From Rebecca billardiae RCC1528 (Eukaryota; Protista; Haptophyta): a stretch of DNA of 64,000 nucleotides. Numbering within the stretch: position 1 is the stretch's first letter; each line of letters opens with the position of its first letter. Below are positions 22,106 through 44,161 of this stretch, piece by piece. The translations under genes and the position numbers were made by a program. The stretch covers positions 3,968,001 through 4,032,000 of the forward strand of contig OZ251225.1 of assembly GCA_965240325.2 (NCBI GenBank), given 5' to 3'. The notes under the pieces were generated by a model. The model searched no databases. It was given only the letters and a program-made list of their open reading frames with translations, and had not been told where the DNA came from.

Positions 22106-24556
22106 CTAGGCGACCTCGTGCAGCGCCTTCACGAACGCGTCTGCGGAGCAGTGGCCGTGCGTGAGCGCCATCTCGAGCACGAGCAGCAGCTTCTTGATCG
22201 GGATGCCGTCCGAGGGGAGCGAGGGAGAGGCGGCCTTGATGTCGGCCTCGCTCATCCCGCCCACCTGCCGCATCACCACCGCCGCCTCGTCCGCGTCCAG
22301 GCCGCGCACCTGCGTGGGCGCGCGGCGGCGCGCGCGCGCGGGCCGTGTGACGACGAGTCGCGCGCGCGCCCGCGCGCGCGCGCGCCCGCGCGCGCCCGTG
22401 TGCGCGCGCGTTGGGTCTCACCGGCAGCACGGCGTTGAACGCGTCCAGCAGCTCGAGCTGCTCGAGCACGGCGGCGCTGCTGCTCGTCGCGATCACGAAG
22501 AGCTTGCTGCTCGCCGAGCCCGCGCGGCGCACGCACACCAGCAGCGTCTGCAGCACCGTGTTCGAGAAGCGCGGCCCGATGCGCACCCACTCGAGCAGCC
22601 GCTCCACGTCGTCGAGCACGACGCACGAGAGCGGCGAGCGGAGCGCGTCGTCAAACACCTTGCCGATGGCGAGCGCCTTGGCGCCCTCGGACATGCCCAC
22701 GTACCGGTCGGGTGAGACCAGCTTGACAAACGGCCACTCCGAGCGCAGCGCGAGGTGAGCGGCCAGCGCGGTCTTGCCCGCGCCGCGCGGGCCCTCGAGC
22801 AGCAGCGCCATGCGCGTCACGCGCGCCGAGCCCTGCGCGCGCACAGGGGCGCACACACGCGCACGCGCGCACGCGCACACGCGCACACACGGCAGGGAGG
22901 CCGCGAGGGAATCAGCGAAGGGGCGTGGCGTGTGCTGAGCGCCGCGGCGCGCGGCGGCACTGCGCGCGGCGGCGCGCGGCGGCACCGCGCGCGCGCCTTG
23001 AGCTGCGTCATGAACGTCTCGGCGGTGGAGAGCAGGTGCGAGAGCGCGGGCCCGTGCTGCACCACACCGCCAGACACGAGCGCGCCGAGGTCGTCGCCCG
23101 CCACGCCGTACGCGGGCTTGACCTCGGTGAGCGCTCGCTCAAAGTCGGCTGCGGAGATGGTGAGGTTGTCGAGCGAGACGTCCTTCAGGTTGTCCACGTG
23201 CACCTGCCGATTGAACGCGTACGACGTCGCGCTCTTCACCAGCCCCTCCAGCTCGGCGCCCGAGAAGTTGCGCGTGCGCGCCGCGAGCGCGCCGAGCTCG
23301 ACGTCGGGCGCGAGGTAGCCGCCCTGCGCCATCGACGCGGTCTTGATCTTGAGGATCTGCGCGCGGCCCGCCTCGTCGGGGAGGTGGATCTCGATCTGCA
23401 CCTCGAGCCGCCCCGGGCGCAGCAGCGCCTCGTCGATCATGTCCTTCCGGTTCGTCATGCCGATCAGCAGGATGTTGTTGAGCGAGTTGACGCCGTCGAT
23501 CTTGGAGAGCAGCTGGTTGACGACCGTGTCGTGCACGCCCGTCGAGTCGGAGCGCGAGCCGCGCGCCTTGCAGATCGCGTCGATCTCGTCGAAGATGACG
23601 ATGTGCAGCTCGGACTCGTCGCCGCGCTCCGCCTGCTCCGCCTCCGCGTCGGCGAACAGCTTGCGCACGTTCTCCTCCGACTGCCCCACGTACTTGCTCA
23701 GCACCTCGGGCCCGTTCACCACCTTGGGCTCGCGCCCGTTGAGCATCTTGCCGATCTGCCGCGCCATCAGCGTCTTGCCCGTGCCGGGCGGGCCGTAGAG
23801 CAGCATGCCCTTGACGTGCGTCACGCCGAGCTTCTGGAGCACCGCCGGCGGGAAGATGCGCGAGGCGAACGCGCGGCGGAAGATGTCCGAGAACTCGGCG
23901 TCGAGCCCGCCGATCCCCATCTGCTCAAAGTTGAAGTCGGAGCGGATGATCTGCGTCGCGCCCTGCCGCGACGCGTCCATGCCGACGAGGGAGAGCGGCG
24001 CGCCCGAGGCCTTGGCGAGCGAGATGAAGGCCTGCGCGTTGAGCATCCCCTGCCGCGCCTCCGCGCCCGCCGCGCCCGGCTGCGTCAGCTCGGCGAACGC
24101 GGCGGTGCTGAGCGTCGCAACGGTGAGCAGCAGGTTGGCGCCCTGGAAGTCGACCGCGAGCGACTGGCCGAGCGTGAAGATCTGGTGGGCGTACCGCTTG
24201 AGCACCGCCTCGACGAGCTGGCCGCCCTCCACCTGCGCCACCCCGCGCACCGTCGCCTTGCGCACGAAGTCCACCTCGAACGTCACGCGGCAGATCGCGT
24301 ACCCGTCCTCGGGCAGCGCGTGCGCGCGCGCCTCCAGCTCGTCGCCGACCGACGCGGCGAGGATGCGGCGCTGCACCGAGTTGAGCGCGAGCGCGCCGTC
24401 GGCCACCTGGGCCGAGGGCTGCGCCGTGTACACGTACCCCTTCACCTCGAGGTACTTGGGCTCGCCCGGCAGCCGCTCGTACGCGGCGGGCGAGACAAAC
24501 ACGCAGTTGGTGAGCGCGAGGTCCTGGCTCGGGCAGTTGGCGCACTTGAGCAGCAT
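22106..24556 (-). CDS. NSF: Vesicle-fusing ATPase NSF/Sec18; exons 24556-22997, 22832-22422, 22309-22106 (~724 aa)
   Basis: N domain CPSQDLALTN; MGIGGLDAEFSDIFRRAFASR; GPPGTGKT; IFDEIDAICK; GMTNRKD; RPGRLEV; D2 LLEGPRGAGKT and IGPRFSN. Introns: GC-AG 22833-22996 and GT-AG 22310-22421. Confidence 0.97.
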
Positions 24557-25101
24557 GGCGGCCCGGCCGACGCGCGCTCGGGCTCGACGCGCGCGTGCAC
24601 GCCCGACGTGCGCGCGCTCGGGGGTGCGACGGGGCGAACGGCCGTGGCGCGCGCGGCGTGCGTGCGCGGGCGTCTCACAGCGTCGTCGTGCTGCGATCTG
24701 CTGATTGATGGCGGCGGCTGGCGGCGGCGCCGAGGCGGGTGCATCCGGGCGATGCATCATGCATCCGGTCTCTGCGCGAAAAGACGAGCTGGAGTGGACA
24801 AGACAGTCGTCGTCGAATTTTACGCCGCCCGGCAGGCGGCAATCCAGTGGCAGCAGACCGAGTCGCGCTCTGCCCAGGCAAGAGCTCTTCTGAGGCGCGG
24901 GTTCACAGCGCGCGACGCCACTTCCGACTTCGGGTCGCCGAGTGTCGCATACAGTGTGTGCGCGCGGCGTGCCAGCAGAGGCTTCAGCAGACGAGTGACA
25001 TGCAGTCACACAGGCCTTCACTCAGTCTCACTCTCAGATGCTGACGACAAGATTGGCGCACTCGGAGAATTGGAGGGCTGGAGGCGCTGCACAGTGGCGG
25101 C

Positions 25102-26298
25102 TCACTTTGTCGACTTGGCGGCGCCGGGCGGCGGCTTGGTGTACGCCTTCTCCGCGGCGTAGCTCGGGTCGTCGAGCAGCCGCTCCAGCTCGCCCAGGTC
25201 CTTCTCCCCCGGGTACAGCTTGCCGCCGATCTCCCACGTCGGGTAGCCCGGCACGCCGCGCGCGCGGCACTCGTCCGCGCGCGAGTCTGCGCCGTCGCGC
25301 GCGCACTCGACGTACTGCAGGGAGGAGAACGCCTGCCGGCCGAGCGTCTCCTTCTGCTCGTAGCAGTGCGAGCACCAGTACGCGCCGTACATGCGCGCGC
25401 CGGCCTCGCGCAGCCGCTTGCCCAGCGCGAGCGCGCGCGCGCCGCTCGGCTGCTCGATCTCGGGCGGCAGATAGAGCGTGGGCCCGGCCGAGGCCTCCGC
25501 GCCCGAGTCCTCTGCGCCCGCGCTCGCGACCAGAGAGGGCGGCGCCGCGCCGCCGCCGTCCGCGCCGGGCGGGGCGGCGGCGAAGAGCGCGGCGGCGAGC
25601 GAGACGCTGAGCGCCGCGCCGCACGCGGCGATCCGCGCCGCCTGCGCGCGCTCGCGCACCAGCCGCGCGTTCCACACGAGCGCGCCGTTGACGAGGCAGA
25701 GCGTGGCCGAGCCGATGCAGTACGGGCACGGCTCGTGCAGCGCGAGCGCGAGGAGGGCGAGGAGGCAGAGGCTGAACGCGGCGCACGCGGCGGTGCCGAG
25801 CTGGAGGAGCGCGCGCGAGCCGCCCTCGAGCCGCGCCTGCGCCGCCTCGCCCACCGCGCCGCGCGTCGCGAGCGGCGCGAGCGCGGCGAGGCCGAGCGTC
25901 GCGTACGCGGCGCAGCCGAGCGCCGAGAGCGGCACCGCGCCCACGGAGGCGTACGGCGAGGAGAGGACGGAGGAGCACGCGGAGCCCGCGGTGCAGAAGG
26001 CCGGGGCCGCCGAGCCCGACAGCTTCACCGCCGTCAGGTAGCCCGAGAGCCCGACCCCCGCGAGCGAGACGGCGCCGCTCGCGAGGCGCGCCGCGTCGTC
26101 GTCGCCCGAGCCGCCGCCGTCCGCGCCGGGCGGCGGGGCGGCGGCGCGCGCGGCCGCGCGCGCGCGCGAGGCGAGTGGCCGGGGTAGCGCGTGCTGCCCG
26201 CGCGCGCCGCGCCTGGCGACCGCCAACCGGCCGCCCGCCGCCGCCGCCGGGTGGGCCGCGAGCAGCGCGAGCGCGACCACGGCGAAGCGCCACGCCAT
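25102..26298 (-). CDS. LTO1: Plastid VKOR-thioredoxin fusion thiol oxidoreductase (LTO1/DsbAB-like)
   Basis: Signal plus transit leader; VKOR C..C-SSVLSSPYA, PLSALG and CPYC; thioredoxin-like MYGAYWCSHCYEQK, YVEC and GYPTWEI. Confidence 0.93.
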   Translation of the reverse strand: MAWRFAVVALALLAAHPAAAAGGRLAVARRGARGQHALPRPLASRARAAARAAAPPPGADGGGSGDDDAARLASGAVSLAGVGLSGYLTAVKLSGSAAPAFCTAGSACSSVLSSPYASVGAVPLSALGCAAYATLGLAALAPLATRGAVGEAAQARLEGGSRALLQLGTAACAAFSLCLLALLALALHEPCPYCIGSATLCLVNGALVWNARLVRERAQAARIAACGAALSVSLAAALFAAAPPGADGGGAAPPSLVASAGAEDSGAEASAGPTLYLPPEIEQPSGARALALGKRLREAGARMYGAYWCSHCYEQKETLGRQAFSSLQYVECARDGADSRADECRARGVPGYPTWEIGGKLYPGEKDLGELERLLDDPSYAAEKAYTKPPPGAAKSTK

Positions 26299-26471
26299 CG
26301 CTTGCCGCGTTGTCGCGTCCGGGCGCGACTCGTTGATCAGCCGGACCCGCGCGCGGCTGGGTGGGCGCGGCTGAGGAGGCTGCTCCGCTCCGGCTGGGCG
26401 CGCACAACGGGCTTCGCCGAGTTCGCGCGCGCACGCGCCACCCGTTCCACGAAGGGCGATTAGTGTAAACC

Positions 26472-26633: not shown

Positions 26634-27630
26634 GGCGCTGCGCGCCGCGCTCGCGGGGTGGCTCGGACACATGCGCGCCTTTGAGCGCCCGGCGACCGCG
26701 CGCGCATCGGCTTCCTCCGCCTGCAAGTCGCCCGCGACCGCGGCCGCCGCCCGCTTCGAGTGGGCCTGCAGTGGGTTGACTGCGCCCGAGTCTGCTCGCC
26801 GCCGAGCGCGGGGATGAGTTGAGCGCGGCGCGAGGCGGCGATCGCGATCGGGCGATCGCATGTGCCCATCTGCGCCCCCTTCGCCACGGCGCGACCGCTT
26901 CAGCATGCGTATGTGACCCCACTTGTCCGGGATGTCGGGAGCGGGCGAACATTGTCGGCCACCGTGTCCGCGCGCGCCGCGCGCGCGCAGGGCTCGTTCG
27001 GATCGGAGGTCACTCCGTGGCGTCTCGTGATGTCTTCCCCGCGCAAGCTGATGGGCACGGTTGGTCCGCATCTGCCGTCATGTGACGTCTACTGATGCCG
27101 TGTACACCATTGTGACAGAACTCGCTAAGCAAGTTCTTCTCACCAGAAAGTTGTCGTCAGCATTGACGCACGTTGCAAGCTGGCAGAGCAGTGGATGGCA
27201 TGACCTAGGTGGCCCATGCGGGGCAACACATGACCATCGGCATGCCCTGATGCCGTTTGTGACGTGTTTCCGATCCGAACGAGCCCTGCGCGCGCGCGGC
27301 GCGCGCGGACACGGTGGCCGACAATGTTCGCCCGCTCCCGACATCCCGGACAAGTGGGGTCACATACGCATGCTGAAGCGGTCGCGCCGTGGCGAAGGGG
27401 GCGCAGATGGGCACATGCGATCGCCCGATCGCGATCGCCGCCTCGCGCCGCGCTCAACTCATCCCCGCGCTCGGCGGCGAGCAGACTCGGGCGCAGTCAA
27501 CCCACTTGAAGCGGGCGGCGGCCGCGGTCGCGGGCGACTTGCAGGCGGAGGAAGCCGATGCGCGCGCGGTCGCCGGGCGCTCAAAGGCGCGCGTGGGTCC
27601 GAGCCATCCCGCCCGCGCGGCGCGCGCCGC
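26634..27630. repeat. ~370-bp inverted repeat with ~260-bp spacer between divergent LTO1 and XRN
   Basis: Arms ~26634-27007 and ~27269-27630. The inner parts are near-identical and the outer parts diverge. Confidence 0.9.
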
Positions 27631-27846
27631 CCAAGTCACGCTTCTCTCGGTCGCACGTCGGCCACGCGCCACCTGTTCGCCATCCTGCCGCCACCAGGTG
27701 GGCAGCCGTGGTGCGGGGCCGCCTGGCTGCCCTGGCGAGCGGCGGAACAACACCCCGTGGAACGGGTGGGCGCCCCGAAGCGACTTGGGTGTGGCGCAAA
27801 GCGCGCCGCCGCCGACCGCCGCCGACAGCAGCGCCGCGCGCTCGCG

Positions 27847-30800
27847 ATGGGTGTGCCCGGCCTCTTCCCGTGGCTCGTGCGCCGGTACGGCGCGGAGATC
27901 GTGCTCGACGGCGACGTGTGGACGCACGCGCACCCGTCCGGCTGCGACCACCTGTACGTCGACCTCAACCACATCGTGCACGGCTGCTGCCACCCTGAGT
28001 GGCCGACGCCCGCGCCGCGGGACGAGGCGGAGATGTTCGCGGCGATCCGCGAGGCGCTGGTCCACCTGGTGCACTTCGCGCGTCCGCGCACGCTCCTCTT
28101 CGTCGCGCTCGACGGCGTCGCGCCGCGCGCCAAGATCAACCAGCAGCGGCGGCGGCGCTTCCTGTCGGCGCGCGCGGCCGGGCAGCGGCGCGAGGCGGCG
28201 GCGCGCGCGCACGCGGAGATGGCGGCGCTGCTGGGCGACCGGCGCGAGAACCTCCCGCCGGTGGAGCAGTGCGACCCGTCGTGGGACTCGAACGTCATCA
28301 CGCCGGGCACGCCCTTCATGGCGCGGCTCGCCGCGGCGGTGCGCGCGACGCTCGAGGAGCAGCTGCAGAGCGACGCCCGTTGGCAGCAGCTGCAGATCGT
28401 GTTCAGCAGCTGGGACGAGCCGGGCGAGGGCGAGCACAAGATCATGCGCTTCGTGCGCCAGCAGCGCGCCCTCGCCTCCGCGCACGGCGGCCGCGTGCAC
28501 CACGCCATCTTCGGCCAGGACGCGGACCTGCTGCTGCTCGCCCTCGGCTCGCACGAGCCGCACTTCTCGATCGTGCGCGAGCGGCGGGGCGGGGGCGGGG
28601 AGGGCGGCGGGCCGGAGGACGCGCTGGCGGAGGGGCTGGACGACGGCTGCCTCTACGCGTCGGTCGTCGAGGCCGCGCGCGCGACCGCCTTCGAGGTCGT
28701 CTCCGTCGGCGCGCTGCGGCTGGCCATCGAGCGCGTCGAGCTCGGCGCCGAGCTGCCGCCCGAGCACGCGGCCGCGGCGGCCGCGCTGTACGGCGGGCGC
28801 GCGCTCTCGCAGGTGGGCGACGAGGAGGCGGCGGCGGCGGCGGCGAAGCTGGGCGGCGCGCGCGGCGCGGCCGGCTCGGGCGAGTCCGCCGAGCTCGAGG
28901 CGCTGATCGACGACCTGCTCGTGCTCGCGTGCGTGTGCGGCAACGACTTCCTGCCCGCGGTGCCGTCGCTGCTCGTGCACGAGGACGGGCTGGGGCTCGC
29001 GCTCGGCGCGTACCACGCGGTGCGCAAGGCGAAGGGGAAGGGGGCGCGGCTGGTGCGCGACGGCGAGCTGCAGCTGCCGCCGCTCTGGGCCGTGCTCACC
29101 GCGCTCGCGAGCGGCGAGGGCGCGCGGCTCGCGCGCTCGGTCGAGCGAGACGCGCGCCGGCTGCGGCGCGAGGCGGCGCTCGCCGCCGCCGCGCGCTCGG
29201 CGAGCTCGCGGCGCGGGCGCTCGTGGCTCACGTCGGCGCACCTGGGCGCGGGCGAGTGGATCTCGCTGGGCGAGCTGGGCGACGACGCCGACGTCGACGA
29301 CGCGCTCGCGCACGCGTACGGCGACGGCGCGGACGGGGGCGAGGACGAGGCGGCGAGCGCGGCGCGGCTGCGCGCGTGCAGCCCGCGCCAGCTGATGGCC
29401 GAGTGCCGCCGCCGCGCGTACGCGGCGGCGAAGGCGGCGGAGCTGCTGCCGCCCGGCGCGGCGGGCGCGGGCGGCGTCGCCTTCGACCGCCCCGGCTGGG
29501 CCGAGGCGTGGTACGCCGCCAAGTTCGCCGACGAGCTGCGCGGCGCGCCCAAGTACGTGCGCGCGGCGCAGGGCGGCGGGCCGGGCGCGGCGCTCGAGGC
29601 GCTGCGCTCGGACGTGGTGTGGGAGTGGGCGCACACGGTGCAGTGGGTGCTGTCGTACTACACGGCGGGGCCGCTCTCCGCCGGGCCGGTCGGCGGCGAC
29701 GCCTTCGCCGCGTGCGCGCAGGCCGCCTCCGACGGCGGCGCGCACGCGGCGACCGCCAGCGCCGTGTGGGACGACTACTACGGCCACCACTACGCGCCCT
29801 TCTGCGCAGACTTCAGCAGGGTGGCGGCGCCGGCGGGGGCGGGCGGGGTGCGCGCGCTGTGGGAGGCGCAGCGCGCGGCGCGTGGCCTCGCGCCGCGCGC
29901 CGCCGCGCAGCCGCCCACCCCGCTCGAGCAGCTGCTTCTCGTGATGCCGCCGCCGTCGTTTGAGGCCGCGCTGCCGCCGCCCGCGCAGGCGCTGCTCGCG
30001 TCCAAGCGCGCGCACCTCTACTTCCCGCAGCCCGAGGGCGCGGGGCTGGGCGCGCTGATCGACGTGGCGCTGCCGGGCGTGCGGTACGCGTGGCAGGCCA
30101 CCGTCCGCCTCCCCGCGCTCCCGCTCGCGCACGTCGCGCGCTTCGCCGCCGAGTCGGTCGTGCCGTACGTGGGCGCGGCCGAGCGCGCGCGGCTGCTCGC
30201 GCGCGCGCCCGCGCTGCTGCACGTGCACGCGGCGCACGCGGACTACGCGCTGCTGCGCGCGGCGAAGGCGGCGACGGACCAGGCGGCGCAGATGCGCTCG
30301 GGCGCGCGCGCGCTCGACCCGCGCGCCCTCGCCGAGCTCAACCTCAACCGGCAGCGCTGCCAGGCGGCCATGCCGGCGCTCGCGCTCTGGGGCGGCGCGG
30401 CCGGCGGCGGCGGCGCGGGCGCGGGGCAGGGGCCGCTCGACGTGCGCTGGTCGGAGGACATCCGCGCGTTCGGCGTGCCGCTGGACATCGCGGACCCGGC
30501 GGGCGTGCACGCGGGCTCGCACCCCACGCGCCCCGCCGTGCTGCCCGGCTCGACGCCGCCCGCGCTGCAGCCCGCTGTGCGCGCGGCCAAGGTGCGGGCG
30601 CGCGCGCGCGGCGCGCACAAGGGGGCGGCGGCGGCGCAGCCGCAGCAGCCGCAGCAGCCGCAGCAGCCGCAGCAGCCGCAGCAGCAACAGCAGCAACAGC
30701 AGCCGCCCGCCGGCGGCGCGGCGTCGGGCCCCGCCCCGCTGCCGCCGCACTGGCGCGAGGCCGTGACCTCTCTGAAGGGCGTGGCTCGCACCTACTACTG

Positions 30801-32919
30801 GAACACCCACACCAAGGAGCGAACGTGGGTGCGGCCGGCGCCGCAGGGGGGGCAGGGGCAGGGAGGGCACGCGGCGTCCCCCGCACGGGCGGCGGCGGCG
30901 GAGGAGGGCGCCGCGGCCTCGCCGGCGCGCACCGCCGCCGTGACCCACACCGTCGCCGCCGCCGCGGCCGCGGCCGTGCCCGCGGCGGCGGCCGCGGCCG
31001 TGGCGGCGGCCGCGGCCGCGCCCGCCGCGGCCGAGCCCGCGGCCGCGGCCGCGGCCAAGCCAGCGGCGGCCGGCGCGAGCACGGGCGGCGGCGGCGGCGC
31101 GGCGCCCGAGCCGAGCGCGGACGAGCGCCCGCTGCCCCCCGGCTGGGCGCGCGCGTACGCCCCGCAGCCCCCCGGCGCCGAGCCTGCCGTGGGCCGCGTG
31201 TACTACTACCACACGGCCTCGGGCAGGACGCAGTGGACGCACCCGGCCGCACCGACGGCGCACCCGCCGCACCCGCCCAGGGCGGCGGCGGCGGAGGCGG
31301 CGGCGGCGCCGCTCTCGGCGGACGAGGAGGAGGCGCAGCTGCAGGCGGCGCTCGACGCGTCGCTCGGCGAGCTCGGCGGCCGGCTGCCGCCCGAGCACGC
31401 GGCGCGCGCGAGCGGCGCGGCGCAGGCGGCTGCGGCGCGCGCGCACGCGGCCGCGCGTCTGCCCGCGCTGCGGACGCAGCTGCAGGAGGCGATGGCGGCG
31501 GCCGACGAGGAGGGCGCGCTCAGCCTCGCGCTGCAGCTCTCCGAGCTCGAGGCCGCGGCGGAGGGCCGCGCGCCCGCGCCCTCGCTGCCGCCGCAGCAGC
31601 CGCAGCAGCCCGCCGCCGCCGCCGGCGGCGGAGGCGCGGCCGACTCCGAGGGCGCACGGCTGCGGTGCGCGCTCGAGCGCGCGGCCGGGCTGGCGGCCAT
31701 GCTGGGCGTGGGCGAGGAGGCGTGCGTGGACGCGCTGCTGGCGCACGGGCTGGACGAGGCGGCCGCGCTCGAGGCGCTGCTCTCCGAGAAGGCCGCGCGC
31801 GAGGCGTCCGAGCAGCTCGACGCCGCCCTCGCCGCCACCCAGCTCGACGCGGACAGCAGCGTGGACGCCGAGACCTCTGAGATCCTCGCGCGCCTCTCAC
31901 AGGGGCAGGAGCCCGCGGAGACGGGCGCGCACCCCAAGCAGAGGCCCAAGATCAAGCGCTCGGCCAACGCGAACGCGCCCGGGTACGACAAGGACCTTTT
32001 GCGCCCCGACAAGCCGGGCTCGTGGCGCGCCGCCGAGAGCGGCGCGGTCAACGTGTTCGTGCATGGCGCGGCCGCGCACACGGAGGACACGGCCACCCTC
32101 TTCCGGCCCAAGGCCGAGCTCAAGGCGGCAAAGGCGGCCGCGCGGCAGCGCAGGCTGGAGGGGCGGAGGCGCGCGAGGCACGCCGCCGCCGACGCGGCCG
32201 CCGCGGCGGGCGCGCCCTCCGCCGACGTCGACCGCCTCCGCGCCGACGGCGGCGGGGGCGCGGACGACTCGTCCAGCTCCGCGGACGAGGCGGAGGCTGC
32301 GGGCGCGCCCAGCCCGCGCCCGCGCGCGAGCGCGGAGCCGGCCGCACCGCCTGCGGCACAGCCGCGCGCGCGCGGCGCCGACGCGCGCGCGGGCGCGGGC
32401 GCGGGCGCACGCGGCGGCGGCGGCGGCGCGCGCGCCGAGCCCGCCGCGGGCAGCCTCTCCGCCGCGGCGCCCCGCTCGCGCCGGCTGGAGGAGGCGCAGC
32501 TGCGGCTGGTGCTCGCGCAGAGCACGGTCGAGACGGAGGCGCCCGACGTGATCGCGGCGCTCGAGGCGAGCGAGGCGGAGGCGGCGGTGGAGGAGGCGGA
32601 GCGCGAGGCGGCGCTCGCGGCGCTGCCGGACGAGTACCGCGCGCACCTGCTGCCCGCGCAGCCCGAGCCCGAGCTCGCGGGCGCGGACGCGCCCGCGGAC
32701 GCGCCCGCGGGCGCGGGCGCGGACGCGGGCGCGGATGCGGACGCGGATGCGGACGCGGATGCGGACGCGGACGCGGGCGCGGGCGCGGATGCGGATGCGG
32801 ATGCGGGCGCGGCGGAGCACGCGGAGGCGGAGAGCGGCGGGGAGGAGGAGGGCAGCAGCGCCGGTGCGCACTCGGACGCCGAGGCGCCACCCGCTGCCGA
32901 CGCCGAGCCCGGCGCGTGA
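27847..32919 (+). CDS. XRN-family 5'-3' exoribonuclease with C-terminal 2xWW, UIMs and UBA-like domain (~1690 aa)
   Basis: MGVPGLFPWL start; YVDLNHIVH, DGVAPRAKINQQRRRRF, DSNVITPGTPFM, PGEGEHKI, GQDADL and GNDFLP. WW at ~30739-30840 and ~31132-31245; UIM-like DEEEAQLQAALDASL. Confidence 0.92.
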   Translation: MGVPGLFPWLVRRYGAEIVLDGDVWTHAHPSGCDHLYVDLNHIVHGCCHPEWPTPAPRDEAEMFAAIREALVHLVHFARPRTLLFVALDGVAPRAKINQQRRRRFLSARAAGQRREAAARAHAEMAALLGDRRENLPPVEQCDPSWDSNVITPGTPFMARLAAAVRATLEEQLQSDARWQQLQIVFSSWDEPGEGEHKIMRFVRQQRALASAHGGRVHHAIFGQDADLLLLALGSHEPHFSIVRERRGGGGEGGGPEDALAEGLDDGCLYASVVEAARATAFEVVSVGALRLAIERVELGAELPPEHAAAAAALYGGRALSQVGDEEAAAAAAKLGGARGAAGSGESAELEALIDDLLVLACVCGNDFLPAVPSLLVHEDGLGLALGAYHAVRKAKGKGARLVRDGELQLPPLWAVLTALASGEGARLARSVERDARRLRREAALAAAARSASSRRGRSWLTSAHLGAGEWISLGELGDDADVDDALAHAYGDGADGGEDEAASAARLRACSPRQLMAECRRRAYAAAKAAELLPPGAAGAGGVAFDRPGWAEAWYAAKFADELRGAPKYVRAAQGGGPGAALEALRSDVVWEWAHTVQWVLSYYTAGPLSAGPVGGDAFAACAQAASDGGAHAATASAVWDDYYGHHYAPFCADFSRVAAPAGAGGVRALWEAQRAARGLAPRAAAQPPTPLEQLLLVMPPPSFEAALPPPAQALLASKRAHLYFPQPEGAGLGALIDVALPGVRYAWQATVRLPALPLAHVARFAAESVVPYVGAAERARLLARAPALLHVHAAHADYALLRAAKAATDQAAQMRSGARALDPRALAELNLNRQRCQAAMPALALWGGAAGGGGAGAGQGPLDVRWSEDIRAFGVPLDIADPAGVHAGSHPTRPAVLPGSTPPALQPAVRAAKVRARARGAHKGAAAAQPQQPQQPQQPQQPQQQQQQQQPPAGGAASGPAPLPPHWREAVTSLKGVARTYYWNTHTKERTWVRPAPQGGQGQGGHAASPARAAAAEEGAAASPARTAAVTHTVAAAAAAAVPAAAAAAVAAAAAAPAAAEPAAAAAAKPAAAGASTGGGGGAAPEPSADERPLPPGWARAYAPQPPGAEPAVGRVYYYHTASGRTQWTHPAAPTAHPPHPPRAAAAEAAAAPLSADEEEAQLQAALDASLGELGGRLPPEHAARASGAAQAAAARAHAAARLPALRTQLQEAMAAADEEGALSLALQLSELEAAAEGRAPAPSLPPQQPQQPAAAAGGGGAADSEGARLRCALERAAGLAAMLGVGEEACVDALLAHGLDEAAALEALLSEKAAREASEQLDAALAATQLDADSSVDAETSEILARLSQGQEPAETGAHPKQRPKIKRSANANAPGYDKDLLRPDKPGSWRAAESGAVNVFVHGAAAHTEDTATLFRPKAELKAAKAAARQRRLEGRRRARHAAADAAAAAGAPSADVDRLRADGGGGADDSSSSADEAEAAGAPSPRPRASAEPAAPPAAQPRARGADARAGAGAGARGGGGGARAEPAAGSLSAAAPRSRRLEEAQLRLVLAQSTVETEAPDVIAALEASEAEAAVEEAEREAALAALPDEYRAHLLPAQPEPELAGADAPADAPAGAGADAGADADADADADADADAGAGADADADAGAAEHAEAESGGEEEGSSAGAHSDAEAPPAADAEPGA

Positions 32920-33164: not shown

Positions 33165-36100
33165 CACAGCAACGACTTCTTTTTTAAAGCGGCCGTTAGC
33201 GTGTCCAGCGGCCAGATTAATTTTCGAAAAATTACTATGCGCTGCGCGCGCGCCCCTAGGGGGCGGCGCGCGCGCGCGGCTGGTCCCCCCTGCATGCCCG
33301 CACCGTCAGCTGCCTGATTGCCGCTACCCAGCCCCGCTACCGTCGCGCGCGACATCCGCGCCGTAAATCACCGTCACCGAGCGGTCCGGCGAGCGCGCCG
33401 CCATCAATTTGCTCCTGAGTGCCGAAAACTCCTTCTCCGGAAGCCCAGCCTCCTCGCGCAGGAGCTTGCGCGCCGTCATGCACTCCGCGATCAGGTCGAT
33501 CGCGTCGGTCTCCGCCCTGCGCTGCCATTCGCGCTGCCGCTTGGCGTACTTCTTCAGCCAGAGCCGCCGCACCTTGTCGCCGAACTCCTCTGCCCACGTC
33601 GCAAGCGACACGCGGCGCACGAGCTGCGCGACCGTCGAGATGTGCGGCTCCGCCGTCGACTTCTTCCCCTCGGCGTACTCGCGGACGAATGAGTCGAGTG
33701 ACTTGCGCGCGTGCACGAGCGGCATCGCACGCTTGGTCACCTGCACGAAATGCCCCTGCACCTGCTCGTCCGCGAGCTGCACGAGGCGCCCCCGCCGCCT
33801 GAGGCGAGACGCCGTCTGCGCCCGCCTCCGTGACCGCCCAGACGTTGAAGCGGAGCGGTGGGACGTTGTGCGAGCCCTGGCCGGCGAGGCTGGCGAGGCT
33901 GACGTAAGCGCCGGTGCACGCCACGATGGCCTTCTGCTCCTCCGCGTAGTCGGCCGCCTCGGCGCCGCCGCCAAAACCGCCGCCGGCCGCGCTGCCGCCT
34001 GCCGAGGCAGTGCTGCCACCGAGGCCGCGCTGCTGCGCGCCGCCGCCGGCCGCGCCGCCGCCGGCCGCGCCGCCACCAGCCGCACCACCACCCGCACTGT
34101 CAGCCGCGCGGCTGGCCGCGCCACATGCCGCGCCACCGGCCACGCGGACGCCAGCACCGGCTGTGCCGCTAGCCACGCCGCTGCCACTGCCGGCCGCGCC
34201 GCCCACGCCGCCGCCCGCGCCCGCGCCCGCGCCCACGTTGCCAGCCGCGCCCCCGGCCGCGCCCCCGGCCGCGCCGCCGGCCGCGCCACCGGCCGCGCGG
34301 ACGCCAGCGCCAGCGGTGCCGCCAGCCACGCAGCTGCCGCTGCTGCTGCCACCAGTGCTGCTGCTGCCGCCCGCACCGGCCGCGCCGCCGCCGGCCGCGC
34401 CACCGCCGGCCGCGCCGCCGCCGGCCGCGCCGCCGCCGGCCGCGCGATCGCGAGCGCTGTCAGCCGCGCCGCTGTCCGCGCCGCCGGCCGCACCTCCGGC
34501 CGCGCCTCCAGCCGCGCGGACGCCAACGCCAGCTGTGCCGCCAGCCACGCCACTGCAGCTGCCGCCCGCGCCGCCCGCGCCGCCGCCAGCACCCGCGCCC
34601 GCGTTGCCAGCCGCGCCGCCGGCCGCGTCCGGCCGCGTCGCCGGGCGCACCGCCGCCTGGCGCGCAGTTGTCGGGCGTGCCGCCGTCGGGCGCGCCGCCA
34701 CCGGGCCCGCCATCGCCCGCGCTGTCAGCCGCGCCGCCGGCCGCGCCGCAGGCCGCGCCACCGGCCGCGCGGACGCCAACGCCGGCTGTGTCGCCAGTCA
34801 CGCCGCTGTCGCTGCAGCTGCCGCCGCTGCTGCCGGCCGCGCCGGCCGCGCGCGGCCGCGCCGCCGGCCGCGCCGCCGCCGGCAGTGCCGCCGCCGGCCG
34901 CGCCACCGCCCGCGCTGTCAGCCGCGCCGCTGGCCGCGCCGCCGGCCGCGCCACCGGCCGCACGGACGCCAGCGCCGACTGTGCCGCCAGCCACGCCGCT
35001 GCCGCTGCCGCTCGCGCCGGCCGCGCCGCCGCCCGTGCCCGCGGACGCGCCCGCGTTGCCAGCCGCGCCGCCCGCCGCGCCGCCGGCCGCGCCGCCGACC
35101 GCGCAACCGGCCGCGCGGACTCCAGCGCCGGCGGCACCGCCAGCTACGCCGCTACCGCTGCCGCTGCCGCCGCTGCCGCCGGCCGCGCCGCCGGCCGCGT
35201 CGCCGGCCGCGCCGCCTGCAGCGCCGCCAGCCGCGCCGCCCTGCCGCGCTGGCCACGTGCAGCGGCGGCAGCTGGCGGCGCCGGTCGCGGTGGGAGCCGG
35301 CCGCTCCGGATCACGTCATTGATCCCGTCGGCGTCCGCACTCCATAGCTCGGGCATGTCCGAGTCCGGCCGCTCCGAGATGGCGATCGCCTCCGACGACG
35401 CGAGCGCAACACCCTCATAGTTGCGCACGATGGCGATCGTGGCCGCGCGCGAGTGCGCTGCGTTTGGCCCGTGTCCGCCGAGAGGAGGAGGACATGCGGC
35501 TGCCCGCGCGGGCGCGCGGACTTGCCGTAGTGCTCCAAGCGATCCAGCACGGCGCCCACGGCCTGCGCCCACGGCCGCGCCGCCGACTCGCTGCCGATCA
35601 TCATCACGCCCGCGCCCGCGTGCTCGCGATTGCGCAGCGCGCTCTCACGTGAGCCAGCCACCGGCGGCGGGATCGGGTGGCGCATGCCCAGGTTGAGCCA
35701 CGTCGAGAACTCTCGGGCTGGCGCGAGCCCACGATGCTCAGTGTGCGGTCCTTCTCGCGCGCCTAGTGCACGACGCCCTCGTCGTCGAGCGAGGTGAAGG
35801 CATGCAAGACGAGCGCGTCTCACGAGAAGAGCCGCAGCTTGGCTACACGCAGCAGGTTGTTCTTCTTCCGCTGGGCCTTGATGGCGACGAGGCTGTTGAC
35901 GCTGCGCTTGACCTCCGCCAGGTAGTTCTCGTTCGGCATGATCGAGTGGTCCACCTCGCTCGCGGCCTCGCGCGCGCGCAGCTTGAGCATCTCGTGCGGC
36001 TGAGCGCCGCGGCCATGCGCAGCCATGCAGATGCGGCAGAGACGTGGCGCCCGATGCGTTAGGCACCTTTGCGATGCAGCTTGGGCTTCCTAGGCTTCGC

Positions 36101-38404: not shown

Positions 38405-41400
38405 TTACATGCCCAGGATCTGAGCACGAAGTTTGAGGAAGGCGGCCGGGCCGAGCGGCTTGGTCATGATGTCGGCCGGGTTCTCGGTGCCGGGGATCAA
38501 GAAGAGCTTGAAGGTGCCGGCTCGGGCGTGCTGACGGTTCCAGTGGTACTGGACGTCGATGTGCTTGGTGCGGTTGTGGTACTTCTCGTTGTCCGTGAGG
38601 TCCACCACCGCCTTGTTGTCCTCGAAGAGCTTGGTCGGCGCGAGCTGCGGGTAGCCGAGGTCGGTGAGCAGCTTGCGCATGAAGATGATCTCCTTGCCGG
38701 CGGAGGTGACGGCCATGTACTCAGCTTCGGTCGAGCTCAGAGCCGTCGTGCGCTGCTTCTCGCGGCGGCCGCTCACCGTCGAGCCGCAGAGGTGCATCAC
38801 GTAGCCGGTGACAGACTTGCGCTCGTCGTGGAGGTCGTTGGCGTAGTCGGCGTCCACGTACGCGACGAGCGTGACGTCCGAGCCCGAGCGGAAGAAGAGG
38901 CCGTGGTTCGGCGTGCCGGCGAGGTAGCGGATGACGCGCTTGGCAGCCTCGAGGTGCTTCTTGCCCGGCTTGGACATGAAGTGGGTGAGCGTGCCGACGG
39001 CGTAGGCGATGTCCGGGCGAAACTGCGTGATGTGGATGAGCGAGCCGACCACGGAGCGGAAGAACGTCGTCGTCTCCGCGTCGAGCGCGTCTGACTCGGA
39101 GCACGGGCCGAGCTTGAGGCCCTCGGTCATCGGCGTGTCGGACGTGTTGCAGTTCATGAAGCCCGTCTTCTCGAGGAGCTCGAGGATGTTCTTGGTGACG
39201 GTCACCATGATGCCGTCCTTGGAGCGCGTGAGCGTGGCCGACAGGTAGCCGTCGATGTCGGCCGTGATGGTCATCTTGTACGAGGATGTGATCTTCGAGA
39301 TGAAGTTGTCGCAGGCGGTCGGGTCGTCGCTGTCGTCGAGGATGAGCATGTCGTCCACGTAGATGCACACGGCGATGATGCCCGACTGCGTGTTGAGGAC
39401 ATAGAGGCACGGGTCGGCCTGGCTCTGCGCGAACCCGTACTCCTTCATCCAGTCGTCGATCATGAGACGCCAGTTGCGGCCGGACTGCTTGAGACCGTAG
39501 AGGCTCTTGAGGAGGCGCAGCACGACGTCGCCCTTCGTCTTCGGCTTGTACCCGAGCGGCAGCTCGAGGTAGATCTCGTAGTCGATCGGCGCGTTGAGGT
39601 ACGCCGTCGTGAAGTCGCCGTGGAAGAGGCGGCGCTGCTTGGCCGCGGCGATGGCGATGATCATCTTGAGGGTCTCGTAGCGGACGACCGAGGAGAAGGT
39701 CTCGTCGTAGTCGATGCCCTCGATCTGCGTGAAGCCCTTGCCCACGACGCGGGCCTTGAACCGCTTGATGTTGCCCTTCTTGTCGCGCTTGATGTTGAAC
39801 ACGGGCGCCGCCTTCAGCGTGCGCATCCCCGGCTTGCGCGGCACCTCCACCCACGTGTCGTTGGCCAGGATGGAGGCGTACTCGGCATCGAGAGCGGCGG
39901 CGAACTGCGTCGCATGCGGGCCGTTGAGTGCTTGCACCGCCGTCGGCGTGTCCGAGAGTCCGATGGCGAGCAGGAGCGCGTAGATGCGCGGCAGCTTGGA
40001 GTAAGTCGGCGACGCGACCGAGTTGACGTGTGCGCGCGCGCGCGTGCGAGATGAGGGCGGGTCGTCGTCGTTGAGCGCGTTGCCGACATCGAGGGAGTCC
40101 TCGGCGCCGGCGGCGTCGTCGTTAGCGTCTCCGACGTAGGCGTGCGGTGCGTCCCCCACCCGCTCAGCGTGTCCGAATGCGCCGGCGCCATCGCGGCGCC
40201 GGACGGCGCCGTGGGAACTTCCCCCATTACCCACATCGGCAGCATGGAGGTCGAGCGGCGGCGACGTCGGCGGCAGCTGCGGCGCGGCGGCGAGCGGGTC
40301 GCGCGCGATGTGAGCGGCGTCGGGGTGGTCGACGTAGAGCGTGTCCTCGTCGAAGCGCACGTGGTGCGAGATGATGAACATGTCCGGGACGATCTGGCCG
40401 TCGCCGGGCACGCGTACGATGATCGCCTTCGTGTAGCGCGTGCGGTTCTTGGGCGGGACGTTCACCATGTGGCCGTCGTCGCCGTGGCCGACGTAGACGC
40501 CCATGACGGCGCGCGGGTCGAGCTTCTTGAAGTGCGTGTTCGGCGGCACGACGTAGGCGACGCAGCCGAAGACACGCAGCTGAGCGAGATCTGGCGGGAA
40601 GCCGCGCAGCAGCTCGAACGGCGTCTTGTCGAACGTCACCGGCGTGGCGATGCGGCGGATGATGTACGCGGCGTGGCGCAGCGCGTCCTTGGCGTAGGCG
40701 TCGATGCGCAGCTTGGAGTGGAACAGGATCGAGCGCGCCGCGTTGAAGAGCGTCTGGATGAAGCGCTCGGCGATCGGGTTGTGCTGCGGCGTGTCGGGCG
40801 GCGTGACCTGGTTGGGGGCGATGCCGTGCGCGCGGCAGATGCCCTCCCAGTCGGTCGAGTTGAGCTCGGGGGCGCCGTCGACGCGGAAGCGGCTGACGGT
40901 GTGGCCGTAGACCGACATGTCGTCGATGAAGCGTCGCATCGCCTCCGGTGCGTCCGAGCGGCGGTCGAGGAAGTAGATGAAGCCGGCCCGGGTGTAGTCG
41001 TCGACAAACACGATCACGTAGAACTTGGCAAAATCGTCCGGGTTCACGATGAACTTGCCGTCGACGTAGCCGGCGACGTCGACATGGACGAGCACGAACG
41101 CCTTCTCCGAGCGGGGCGACGTGGACGTGAACGAGTTGCGCTTCATCTTGGCGAGCGCGCACGAGCAGTCCGACTTGAGGTTGCGCGCGCCGAGGTGCTT
41201 GGATGCGGCGAGCGTGCGGTTGACGGCAGCTGCGTGAGCGTGGCCGAGCCGGAGGTGAGCGACGCGCGAGAGCTCGTCGGTGTCCTTGAACTCGACGCAG
41301 CACTCGTCGCAGAACGTGTCGTCGTCCGGCGCGAGGTCGGCGGTCTGCGAGGCCTGGTCCATGGTCACGATGACGAGAGCGCCGTCGGACGTGGGCGGCT

Positions 41401-44161
41401 GCGCCGGCGGCGGCGGCAGCGAGGACTGGAGCGGGGCGGGCGGCACGTGGAGGCCGGACGCGGCGATGGTGGGCGACGGCGAGTCGTCGTCCGGGATGAA
41501 GACGGCGCATGCGAGATCGCGGCCGTGCAGAGGAACGAGCTTGTCGCCGTACAGCAGGTACCGGCCGCCCTGCGCGTGGATCGGGGTGGCGCCGGACATG
41601 AAGGTGGTCGGCGCCGCGAGCGAGATGAACGAGATGCCGAGGCGGGTCAGCCAAGTGTCGCTCATGTAGAAGCCCGGGACGTCTGGAGAGAGCGGGACGT
41701 CCATGAGCGGCAGCGTGATGAGGTCGCCGTCGATCGAGCGCATGCCGAGGGCGAACGAGGCCGAGGTGTTGATCTTGATCCGCGTGCCGTTCGCCGCGCG
41801 CGCCTCCGAGAACTGGCGGAAGGACTTGGCGGCAAACCGAGAGAACGCGGTCGAGGCGATGGTGGTGTCCGCGCCGGTGTCGATCATGATCGAGATGCTC
41901 GCCTGGGCGATGTCGCCTGTGAACGGCGTGCCGATGGCGAAGGAGATCGTCGAGTGCACGTTCTCAATCTCCTCCGGATCGGCGAGCAACGGCTGCTGGA
42001 TGCAGGTCGGGTTGATCGGGTCAAACGAGCGGGAGACGCCGCAGATGATGGGCGGGCCGGTGCGGGCGCAGCAGGTGACCGCGGTGAGGATCGAGATGAT
42101 GGCGAGGACGGCGAGCGCGACGAGGAAGAGGAAGGCACCGTGCGAGGACTTGAAGAGCGCGCGGAGCCGACCCTCGTGCTTGAACCGCGGCGGCGGCGGC
42201 TCGTACCGGACGATCAGGTCATCGATGTAGGCGCCGGCGTCACCGAAAGACCGTGCGCGATGGATCTCGGCCTCGGCCGCGGCGGCTGCGGCGAGGAACT
42301 CGTACGGGCTGAGCGTGAGCGGCTCTCCGGCGAGCTGGCCGAGGTGGCCGAGCGGGTAGGTGTAGTTGCCCGCGGTGGAGACGTCGTCCAGGCTGGGGCA
42401 GTCGTCGGACGTGTCCGAGGCCGCGTCCGAAGCCGAGGTCGTGGACGAGGGAGTGCACGGGACAAGGTCCGGCAGCTCATCGTCCGTCTCCGAGGCCGAG
42501 TCGGAGGCGGAGTCGTCGCGGTCGTCCGGGGGGTTGGCGAGACGGAACGGCTTGAGGTGGAACGGCTCGTAGGAGGCGGGCTTGCGGATGGACTGGCGCA
42601 ACGCCATGATGAGCACATTCTGGCCGCGCTCGAGCTCGGCCGCCGTCGCGAGCTGGATCGGGGAGCCGGCCTCAGACGCCGGCGGCGACGGCGAGTCGAC
42701 CTGCGTCGGCGGCGACGGCGGGCCGAAGGGCGGCGGCGGCGAGCTGGCCTGCGTCGGCGGGTCGAACAGTGGCGGCGGCGGCGAGTAGAGCGCCGGCTGC
42801 TGGTCGATGAGCGACAGCGCCGGCTGCTGCGAGTCGGCGGGCGGCGGCAGCGGCGGCGTGTTGGTGAGCGCCGGCTGCGAGTTGGAGTGCGCCCGCGACA
42901 GCTGCGGGTCGGCGGGCGGCGGCGAGTTGGCGGGCGGCGGCGGCGGCGGCGGCGCGCCGGCGGGCTGCCGCGACGACGGCGTGAGGACGAGCGTCGGCAG
43001 CGAGTTGAAGCGCGCCCGCGACAGCGGCGAGTCGGCGGGCGGCTGCGAGTTGGCGGGCGGTGGCGGTGGCGCGTCGGCGTCGGTCGCCGCCGGCTGCGAG
43101 TTGGGGCCTGACGCCGAGCCCGAGATGGAGATGGCGTTGAGCGTCGGCGTGCCGTCCTGGATGAGCCGCACGCGCGTCGTGGTCGCCGACGGCTTCGCCC
43201 GCTGCGGCGTCGGCTGCGGCTGCGACTGCGAGGGCGCGGAGGGCACGCGCTGGAGCTTGTTGGACTTGTGAGTCGGGCGGCGCGCGCCGCCGGAGCGAGC
43301 GTCGGCTGCGGGCGTCGCGCCCGAGGAGCGCGAGGTGGACGTGTGGGGGCGGTTCGGGCAGTCGCGGTTCCAGTGCATGCCGCCGCAGTACTTGCACGGG
43401 GTAGGAGGCATGGATGCGCCGGGCTGGCCCTTGGAGGTGAGCGCGTTGACGGCCTGGCGGTTGGGGTTCGTGCCGTTGGCGGCGGCGGCGACGCGGTCGA
43501 GATCGTGCACGCGCTCGATGAGATCCTCCACCGAGATGGGCTGGTCGTTCATCGTCGCGATCACCGAGCTGACGAAGGACGGGTTGCGGCCGTAGAGGTT
43601 CACGAGGATCACGACGAGCGTGAAGATGTCGTCCTTGATCTCGACGCCGCGCAGCTCCGTGGCGTTGGACATCACGCGGGCAGCAAAGGCGTGGAAGCTC
43701 TCGCTCGGCGACAGTTTGATCGAGAGCAGGGCGTACAGCTTGGCGACGAGCGAGGAGGGGCGGGAGCTGTTGCAGCGCACGTTGAGCGCGTTGACGAGAT
43801 GAGACAGCTCGAGCCCGAGACCCGAGTGCTGCAACTGCGCGATGATCGGGTCGAGGATGCGAGGAGCGACCGCCTTGAGAAGCAACTGCACGATGAAAGC
43901 CTGCGTGCGCAGCTGCTTGGCCTGGATGGTGGCGGCGGCGGTGGACGGGGGGCAGACGATGGGCTTGTCCGCGCCGGTATCGTCCTTGCCCGGCTCGAGG
44001 GGCGAGGACGGGTTGGAGAACGCGAGCGCGACGTCCATGTCCGGCTTCGACGTGACCATGACCACAAGAACGGAGATGGCCGTGCGGAGGTCCTGCGGCT
44101 TGAGGACGAGAGCTCGCGGCGGGAGCTGGTCACGCATGTCGCCACCCGGCGGCTCCGCCAT
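38405..44161 (-). CDS. Copia gag-pol polyprotein (1918 aa, uninterrupted)
   Basis: Zn knuckle CKYCGGMHWNRDC; protease IDTGA; HLRLGH; integrase VHVD/VDDYTR/RVDGA/NPIAER; RT YGLKQS and YVDDM; RNase H DADYA, SSTEAEY, KHIDV and ADIMTKPL. Order PR-IN-RT-RH. Confidence 0.97.
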   Translation of the reverse strand: MAEPPGGDMRDQLPPRALVLKPQDLRTAISVLVVMVTSKPDMDVALAFSNPSSPLEPGKDDTGADKPIVCPPSTAAATIQAKQLRTQAFIVQLLLKAVAPRILDPIIAQLQHSGLGLELSHLVNALNVRCNSSRPSSLVAKLYALLSIKLSPSESFHAFAARVMSNATELRGVEIKDDIFTLVVILVNLYGRNPSFVSSVIATMNDQPISVEDLIERVHDLDRVAAAANGTNPNRQAVNALTSKGQPGASMPPTPCKYCGGMHWNRDCPNRPHTSTSRSSGATPAADARSGGARRPTHKSNKLQRVPSAPSQSQPQPTPQRAKPSATTTRVRLIQDGTPTLNAISISGSASGPNSQPAATDADAPPPPPANSQPPADSPLSRARFNSLPTLVLTPSSRQPAGAPPPPPPPANSPPPADPQLSRAHSNSQPALTNTPPLPPPADSQQPALSLIDQQPALYSPPPPLFDPPTQASSPPPPFGPPSPPTQVDSPSPPASEAGSPIQLATAAELERGQNVLIMALRQSIRKPASYEPFHLKPFRLANPPDDRDDSASDSASETDDELPDLVPCTPSSTTSASDAASDTSDDCPSLDDVSTAGNYTYPLGHLGQLAGEPLTLSPYEFLAAAAAAEAEIHRARSFGDAGAYIDDLIVRYEPPPPRFKHEGRLRALFKSSHGAFLFLVALAVLAIISILTAVTCCARTGPPIICGVSRSFDPINPTCIQQPLLADPEEIENVHSTISFAIGTPFTGDIAQASISIMIDTGADTTIASTAFSRFAAKSFRQFSEARAANGTRIKINTSASFALGMRSIDGDLITLPLMDVPLSPDVPGFYMSDTWLTRLGISFISLAAPTTFMSGATPIHAQGGRYLLYGDKLVPLHGRDLACAVFIPDDDSPSPTIAASGLHVPPAPLQSSLPPPPAQPPTSDGALVIVTMDQASQTADLAPDDDTFCDECCVEFKDTDELSRVAHLRLGHAHAAAVNRTLAASKHLGARNLKSDCSCALAKMKRNSFTSTSPRSEKAFVLVHVDVAGYVDGKFIVNPDDFAKFYVIVFVDDYTRAGFIYFLDRRSDAPEAMRRFIDDMSVYGHTVSRFRVDGAPELNSTDWEGICRAHGIAPNQVTPPDTPQHNPIAERFIQTLFNAARSILFHSKLRIDAYAKDALRHAAYIIRRIATPVTFDKTPFELLRGFPPDLAQLRVFGCVAYVVPPNTHFKKLDPRAVMGVYVGHGDDGHMVNVPPKNRTRYTKAIIVRVPGDGQIVPDMFIISHHVRFDEDTLYVDHPDAAHIARDPLAAAPQLPPTSPPLDLHAADVGNGGSSHGAVRRRDGAGAFGHAERVGDAPHAYVGDANDDAAGAEDSLDVGNALNDDDPPSSRTRARAHVNSVASPTYSKLPRIYALLLAIGLSDTPTAVQALNGPHATQFAAALDAEYASILANDTWVEVPRKPGMRTLKAAPVFNIKRDKKGNIKRFKARVVGKGFTQIEGIDYDETFSSVVRYETLKMIIAIAAAKQRRLFHGDFTTAYLNAPIDYEIYLELPLGYKPKTKGDVVLRLLKSLYGLKQSGRNWRLMIDDWMKEYGFAQSQADPCLYVLNTQSGIIAVCIYVDDMLILDDSDDPTACDNFISKITSSYKMTITADIDGYLSATLTRSKDGIMVTVTKNILELLEKTGFMNCNTSDTPMTEGLKLGPCSESDALDAETTTFFRSVVGSLIHITQFRPDIAYAVGTLTHFMSKPGKKHLEAAKRVIRYLAGTPNHGLFFRSGSDVTLVAYVDADYANDLHDERKSVTGYVMHLCGSTVSGRREKQRTTALSSTEAEYMAVTSAGKEIIFMRKLLTDLGYPQLAPTKLFEDNKAVVDLTDNEKYHNRTKHIDVQYHWNRQHARAGTFKLFLIPGTENPADIMTKPLGPAAFLKLRAQILGM

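Follow-up and report, generated by a model that had tools for sequence, protein, structure and literature searches.

Exoribonucleases of the XRN family normally reach their substrates by way of separate partner proteins. The canonical XRN2/Rat1 enzymes, of about 950–1050 residues, carry no WW domain, ubiquitin-interacting motif (UIM) or ubiquitin-associated (UBA) domain and are recruited via the separate proteins Rtt103 and Rai1. In the Rat1-Rai1-Rtt103 system, Rat1 is brought to RNA polymerase II (Pol II) by an adaptor that binds the C-terminal domain (CTD) of the polymerase (PMC11381523, PMC11972402). XRN1/Pacman has the same catalytic core, followed by domains D1–D4 (PAZ/Tudor, KOW, winged helix and SH3-like), and XRN1 clears mRNA after ribosome collisions (PMC6598757). 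In Cue2, it is by way of CUE domains that an SMR endonuclease reaches collided ribosomes carrying ubiquitin (PMC6598757, PMC9841427). An active question is how stalled machines marked with ubiquitin are linked to 5'-3' decay. Here we describe an XRN gene on the plus strand (27847..32919) of a 64,000-nucleotide stretch of DNA from the haptophyte Rebecca billardiae RCC1528 (assembly GCA_965240325.2, contig OZ251225.1, positions 3,968,001 to 4,032,000; hereafter the window). We take this XRN locus to be one nuclear gene of an alga whose genome is very rich in GC. The complete, apparently single-exon coding sequence joins a predicted XRN2-like nuclease core to a tail with two WW domains, four UIM-like motifs and a UBA-like segment. 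We consider it probable that the product is an XRN2-like nuclease tethered by this tail to proline-motif and ubiquitin-marked partners, and the XRN-WW-UIM-UBA fusion may be read as a 'Rosetta stone' hint that the coupling can be direct.

WW domains and putative ubiquitin-binding modules in the C-terminal tail

The nuclease core is separated from the tail by a Gln/Pro-rich linker with QPQQ repeats and a poly-Q run, read from the translation (30634..30702; this and all other features of the protein lie on the plus strand). The tail was compared with the WW HMM of Pfam (PF00397), which the pair of WW domains matched with 43.6 bits against a cut-off of 26.9. WW1 (residues 965–997, 30739..30837) scores 25.8 bits alone and has a Prp40/FBP11-like YYWNTxTK..TW pattern, and its sequence matches in the PDB are the WW domains of Nedd4, Prp40 and GAS7. 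WW2 (residues 1096–1133, 31132..31245) scores 36.9 bits and has a long first loop and a GRVYYY..TQW pattern resembling Pin1; its PDB sequence matches are the WW domains of Pin1, SETD2 and Salvador. The W...W..P pattern, consisting of the two signature Trp residues and the C-terminal Pro, is present in both. Judged by these matches and signature residues, both WW domains are genuine, and their ligand class is not readable from sequence.

Candidate UIMs were identified with a strict consensus of at least two acidic residues followed by phi-x-x-A-phi-x-x-S. The tail contains three strict matches and one relaxed match, against 0.35–0.67 matches in composition-preserving shuffles (global or block; P = 0.002–0.009), an enrichment of about 6- to 9-fold. 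Across the other open frames of the window, the consensus was matched twice in 73,683 residues (0.03 per 1000 residues). Motif 1 (residues 1159–1176, 31321..31374) and motif 2 (residues 1220–1236, 31504..31554) both follow the strict consensus and are separated from each other. Single-sequence AlphaFold2, run without an alignment, placed helices over both of them, with a predicted local distance difference test (pLDDT) score of 86–93 for the block that holds motif 2, and motif 1 was also reported by the Pfam UIM HMM with 14.2 bits (E 0.04). Nearer the C-terminus, motif 3 (residues 1547–1563, 32485..32535) matches the relaxed consensus only, as Val replaces the conserved Ala, and stands in tandem with motif 4 (residues 1567–1578, 32545..32580), which is again a strict match, the consensus fit here extending over residues 1563–1579. 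Short helices of the same acidic-phi-x-x-A-phi-x-x-S type, including a tandem pair, are shared with multi-UIM receptors such as S5a/Rpn10 and Rap80.

The UBA-like segment lies between the two groups of UIM-like motifs (residues ~1272–1314, 31660..31788). Its L-G-V loop falls within an LGV-x7-AL-x5-D-x3-A-x3-LL spacing, which we take to match the UBA pattern of hHR23A. When residues 1262–1325 were folded alone with single-sequence AlphaFold2, a three-helix bundle with a pLDDT of 88 was obtained. The top 50 Foldseek matches for this model are nearly all UBA or UBA-like, every one of them with E ≥ 0.88, and include ubiquilin-1, ubiquilin-2, CIP75, hHR23A, USP5/13, EDD, TNK1, NAC and the N-terminus of EF-Ts; identity to the UBA domains of ubiquilin and hHR23A is 30–42%. 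Alignment with VIA-align gave Z scores of 5–6.7 and root-mean-square deviations of 1.2–2.4 Å over 40–54 residues, with the hHR23A UBA superposing at 1.2 Å over 40 residues (32% identity). A language-model feature search placed the segment nearest to a UBA family cluster with a weak score of 0.80. In Foldseek, only the UBA piece folded alone was informative; the 181-residue model that spans the UIM-like motifs and the UBA-like segment was not. These predicted structures make the assignment of a UBA fold consistent, short of proven. The segment resembles the C-terminal type of UBA domain in the receptors ubiquilin and Rad23, and the UBA domains of ubiquilin and hHR23A are among its best structural matches. 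Unlike the protein described here, S5a/Rpn10, Rap80, ubiquilin and Rad23 are shuttle or adaptor proteins without a nuclease, and the putative ubiquitin-binding modules of our protein are sub-threshold in Pfam.

An initial annotation of this locus, made from the DNA alone, had proposed two WW domains, three to four UIM-like helices and a UBA-like segment in the tail. The WW domains are borne out by the Pfam cut-off that the pair exceeds. The UIM-like helices are upheld by consensus and enrichment and fall short of the Pfam threshold, and the UBA-like segment is supported by predicted fold and structural matches without a Pfam or PDB sequence match.

Several points weigh against reading the tail as a ubiquitin-binding tether on an active nuclease. 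The UIM search expression, though it follows the textbook consensus, was formulated when the motifs were already known. In Pfam, motif 1 stays below the cut-off of 21 bits for UIM (PF02809), motifs 2–4 were not reported at all and no UBA match (PF00627) was obtained even at E ≤ 10, and sequence searches of the PDB with the UIM and UBA pieces gave only chance matches of DARPin type. E values of at least 0.88 and Z scores below 8 lie in a range that is common for helical models, and an Ala/Leu/Glu-rich segment with Gly breaks may form a three-helix bundle in silico whatever its ancestry. No orthologue of the tail was found in word-index, metagenome and representative-protein searches. A search for RNA runs on this stretch listed none, and the fusion of core and tail is predicted from the genomic DNA of a single gene in a single genome. 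The core diverges to an unusual degree (branch length 2.61, low XRN_M score), so that full activity is assumed.

The points that concern the tail would also fit a different explanation, in which the fusion of XRN and WW domains is real and the UIM- and UBA-like segments are chance products of a helix-prone, low-complexity tail rich in Ala, Glu and Leu. Such a tail would work only through its WW domains, or would be a disordered region that acts as a spacer or forms condensates, and would not read ubiquitin. The alanine content of the protein (26%), a Pfam record of one sub-threshold UIM and no UBA, PDB searches that yield no UIM or UBA protein, modest structural scores from a single-sequence model and searches that found no homologue of the tail all speak in its favor. 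We nevertheless hold it to be unlikely, if well worth keeping in view. The UIM consensus is enriched over the shuffles as given above and, relative to the window's other open frames, ~100-fold. A single fold family accounts overwhelmingly for the best structural matches of the UBA-like segment, the identity to bona fide UBA domains reaches 30–42% and the spacing around the loop agrees. Two types of ubiquitin-binding module, moreover, occur together, and with the WW domains this places three module types linked to ubiquitin signaling in a single tail, a more coherent picture than chance resemblance would give.

A single coding frame joins core and tail

The genome of R. billardiae is ~80% GC and the window about 60–82% GC. 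Open frames are found on every strand at such a composition and are by themselves hardly informative. The stop-to-stop frame around the XRN gene, for example, comprises 1952 codons (27061–32919). The gene boundaries were therefore placed by two features, the MGVPGLF sequence at 27847, which is the canonical XRN N-terminus, and the codon-position signal that begins there. The resulting coding frame (27847–32919) is uninterrupted and consists of 1690 codons and a stop. In 300-nucleotide windows, the GC content at third codon positions (GC3) is 0.94–1.00 from codon 1 to ~1600, with a GC content at second positions of 0.44–0.84. At a resolution of 30 codons the in-frame GC3 is 0.80–1.00, the lowest value still being at least 0.80 across all 1690 codons, and it falls outside the gene to 0.56–0.76 upstream of the start and to 0.54–0.57 past the stop. 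As GC3 is continuously high, the nuclease core runs into the tail without any stretch that resembles an intron or intergenic DNA. Core and tail thus form a single coding frame, apparently in one uninterrupted exon, as the initial annotation had stated for the open frame. The range that it gave for the tail modules (30739–32600) also proved correct, as WW1 begins at 30739 and the fourth UIM-like motif ends at 32580.

A scan of GC3 revealed no other coding segments on the plus strand inside or adjoining the XRN gene, the nearby coding-type segments being on the opposite strand. An antisense open frame of 1430 residues was rejected as a gene, since it mirrors the GC3 pattern of the XRN frame.

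These data also bear on the possibility that the gene model or the assembly is at fault and that the core and the WW/UIM/UBA tail are two genes or transcripts, brought together by the rarity of stops at 80% GC or by a mis-join. That no database protein matches the full-length model, that the model is derived from genomic DNA and that long open frames occur on every strand (such as the antisense frame of 1430 residues) would agree with such an artefact. The junction itself (residues 800–965) argues otherwise, as coding-type GC3 runs across it without a break or a change of frame and stays at 0.80 or above in every window, against 0.54–0.76 in the non-coding flanks. Neither an internal start context nor an intergenic-like stretch was seen, and the flanking genes are oriented on the opposite strand. 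We therefore consider an artefact very unlikely and retain the reading of one gene that encodes both core and tail.

The nuclease core and its relatives

The first 245 residues (27847..28581) form the XRN_N catalytic domain, with the acidic residues and the 5'-phosphate pocket, and match Pfam PF03159 at an E value of 6.6e-71 (239 bits, the cut-off being 22.9) over positions 1–240 of the 241 in the model. The helical XRN_M region (PF17846; residues 349–812, 28891..30282) is divergent, carries the CGNDFLP and W..YY..HYAPF motifs and was matched in two parts, residues 349–611 with 71.7 bits (7.9e-20) and residues 687–812 with 39.5 bits (cut-off 23.8). In an alignment, the sequences YVDLN, LDGVAPRAKINQQRRRRF, GEGEHKI, GQDADL and CGNDFLP correspond column by column to those of yeast Rat1, of animal XRN2 and of an XRN1-type protein, and the same holds for the LDG of the acidic motif set and for the phosphate-pocket segment PRAKINQQRRRRF. 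All seven acidic active-site residues and the K/Q/R/R 5'-phosphate pocket are conserved in this alignment, where the roles of the residues are those that we take them to have from structural work on XRN enzymes. The core is predicted to be an apparently competent XRN 5'-3' exoribonuclease, and the XRN_N and XRN_M scores together with the alignment bear out the initial annotation of an XRN catalytic region with intact acidic motifs.

The affinity of the core within the family was assessed by comparison with XRN chains in the PDB, where XRN2/Rat1 chains scored 210–228 bits and XRN1 chains 153–181 bits. The XRN1-specific D1, D2/D3 and SH3-like domains (PF18332, PF18334 and PF18129) gave no match at E ≤ 1 on the full protein, whereas an XRN1-type control protein (P0268) shows all three. 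With a single exception, the 268 best relatives likewise had no similarity to the D1-SH3 region of the sole XRN1-type protein fetched. The best relatives in a word-index protein search are XRN2-type or XRN2-named proteins; the search did not return the protein itself, which is thus absent from that collection. By sequence similarity, the core is closer to XRN2/Rat1 than to XRN1. It has the catalytic fold and motifs of XRN2/Rat1 and, like these enzymes, is without the C-terminal domains of XRN1; in contrast to XRN2/Rat1, no zinc knuckle was seen in the protein. With XRN1/Pacman the similarity of the shared catalytic core is lower, and none of the D1–D4 domains that follow the XRN1 core was detected.

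A quick maximum-likelihood tree with a single XRN1 outgroup, in which the composition of our sequence deviates, groups the core with a green-algal set (Bryopsis, Coccomyxa, Trebouxia, Micractinium and Chlorella) with a Shimodaira–Hasegawa-like approximate likelihood ratio test (SH-aLRT) support of 95, outside the animal-fungal XRN2 clade. The branch leading to our protein is the longest in the tree (2.61), and long-branch and composition effects could distort this grouping. The green-algal proteins, which are named '5'-3' exoribonuclease 2', are the closest full-length relatives, with 31–36% identity over the core. They share with it the signature residues NHI.H, EPGEGEHKIMRF and GQDADL and the insertion after YY..G, which fits the grouping; their C-terminal extensions differ from the tail described here in having no similarity to it and no WW domain. 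A comparison with XRN1 and XRN2, proposed in the initial annotation as a check, therefore yields an XRN2-like core by PDB scores and an uncertain placement in the tree, on a long branch, outside the XRN2 proteins of animals and fungi.

The divergence of the core admits a further explanation, namely that the protein is a decaying or neofunctionalized XRN paralogue whose core is no longer a processive nuclease and which serves as an RNA- or ubiquitin-binding scaffold; the very long branch, an XRN_M score of ~72 bits where typical XRNs reach 200–500 and the alteration of the WxWFYPYHYAP motif to WDDYYGHHYAP point that way, but seven acidic residues and a phosphate pocket that are intact, as would be unexpected without selection for catalysis, in a frame free of stops and frameshifts make it extremely unlikely.

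The closest relative of any length (P0122) is 74% identical and is a 180-residue N-terminal fragment only, located on a 2.5-kb ENA contig that ends there. The same contig also contains a 578-residue gene upstream on the opposite strand (3–1736, minus strand). In one protist XRN (P0152), XRN_N and XRN_M are set apart by inserted zf-CCCH and R3H domains, which indicates that the gain of accessory domains by an XRN is as a type of event not exceptional. In another relative (P0121), one model apparently holds two tandem XRN copies, as judged from sequence.

Distribution of the domain architecture

The combination of an XRN core with WW domains and UIM or UBA modules was searched for among relatives of the core, in larger sequence collections and in the literature. 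None of the 120 best word-index matches to the full-length protein has a WW, UIM or UBA entry in Pfam, and phmmer searches with the whole tail and with each WW domain against 268 XRN relatives found nothing. The latter result agrees with the initial annotation, according to which canonical XRN1 and XRN2 lack the modules of the tail. Word-index searches aimed at the tail gave no return; this is weak evidence, as Ala-rich words probably swamped the candidates. A metagenome scan with residues 1090–1430 produced 508 pattern matches, of which 0 were confirmed. In an exhaustive search of representative proteins with residues 1–1200, the best 150 matches were all driven by XRN_N, and matches to the tail only would rank below these. 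Among the papers searched for XRN combined with WW, UIM or UBA, none described the architecture, two co-occurrence matches being unrelated. The combination of XRN with WW and UIM/UBA appears to be undescribed.

Proposed function

By analogy with the described systems, we infer ubiquitin binding, tethering, a compartment and targets for the protein as follows. The core would degrade 5'-monophosphate RNA processively, as all XRNs do. The C-terminal 740 residues would be for the most part a disordered Ala-rich tether studded with protein-recognition modules, namely a pair of WW domains, four UIM-like helices (two apart from each other, two in tandem) and a single UBA-like bundle of three helices. 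The WW domains would bind partners that display proline-rich or phospho-Ser/Thr-Pro motifs and the UIMs and the UBA segment would bind ubiquitin or polyubiquitin. Several weak modules on one flexible tail could thereby provide avidity for a target that is multiply marked.

Two targets are considered the most likely. If the target is Pol II, the CTD would serve as the ligand of the WW domains, with ubiquitylated, stalled Rpb1 as that of the UIM and UBA modules, and the protein would be a torpedo that recruits itself without an adaptor of the Rtt103 kind; the CTD-adaptor job of Rtt103 is the role proposed here for the WW domains. If the target is the ubiquitylated collided ribosome, the protein would be an exonuclease counterpart of Cue2. 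Cue2/NONU-1/N4BP2 are, like our protein, ribonucleases with ubiquitin-binding modules of their own, a functional likeness and not homology; they differ from it in having an SMR endonuclease in place of XRN, CUE in place of UIM and UBA modules, and no WW domain. That the core is XRN2-like points to the nucleus and to Pol II. In plants, XRN4, which is an XRN2-type paralogue, works in the cytoplasm, so the type of core does not fix the compartment. Pol II and collided ribosomes are each a possible target, though a doubtful one, and are almost equally likely, with Pol II very slightly ahead; the remaining likelihood goes to other partners.

In its most specific form, the proposal is that this is the first XRN-family exonuclease that reads ubiquitin itself, docking directly on ubiquitylated stalled Pol II or on collided ribosomes with the help of its WW domains. 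We offer this version only tentatively and would sooner bet against it. If true, it would provide a direct physical link between ubiquitin signaling and 5'-3' RNA decay, in which one polypeptide replaces separate adaptors (Rtt103 for Rat1) or a different nuclease (Cue2). The fusion itself indicates that the gain of accessory domains has diversified haptophyte XRN paralogues, as it has the protist XRN with inserted zf-CCCH and R3H domains.

Other features of the tail and genomic neighborhood

The remainder of the tail has few recognizable features. Two basic patches occur within residues 1330–1546, one of which, KQRPKIKR (residues 1364–1371, 31936..31959), was read from the translation and is possibly a nuclear localization signal. 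Searches of Pfam with residues 801–964 and 1330–1550 detected no domain, and a language-model feature search with residues 1335–1445 returned nothing. The C-terminus (32645..32916) is acidic and of low complexity, consisting of Asp, Ala, Gly and Glu in the translation, and has a GC3 of 0.80–0.97 in 30-codon windows. Two short sequences occur both in an insertion of the core and beside UIM-like motif 1, LPPEHAA at residues 303–309 and 1180–1186 and SLGELG at residues 473–478 and 1172–1177. These repeats may be due to chance, or may hint at an internal duplication or a WW ligand.

Upstream of the XRN gene, most of the intergenic space between the XRN start and a gene on the minus strand is occupied by an inverted repeat (26634–27007 and 27269–27631) with 238 nucleotides at 100% and 131 nucleotides at 94% identity and a spacer of 261 nucleotides. 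It may represent a foldback element or a palindromic promoter region, or it may be an artefact of the assembly. The minus-strand gene (25117–26376), divergent from the XRN gene, encodes a protein of the vitamin K epoxide reductase (VKOR) family. Beyond it, two adjacent open-frame pieces (22329–24571, minus strand) encode a Cdc48/p97-like AAA ATPase with CDC48_N, CDC48_2, AAA and AAA_lid_3 domains; the split is probably due to an intron or to a change of frame. This gene of the ubiquitin system lies 3 kb from the XRN gene, a proximity that is probably coincidental. Coding-type GC3 without a Pfam family at E ≤ 0.001 was observed at 9781–11640 (minus strand), 12744–13883 (plus strand) and 33375–33824 (minus strand). 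Further downstream, a frame of 1900 codons (38429–44128, minus strand) with coding-type GC3 contains an integrase core, a retroviral SH3-like domain and RVT_2 and corresponds to the pol of a Ty1/copia-type retrotransposon, and a large ankyrin-repeat protein is encoded at 57550–60489 (plus strand).

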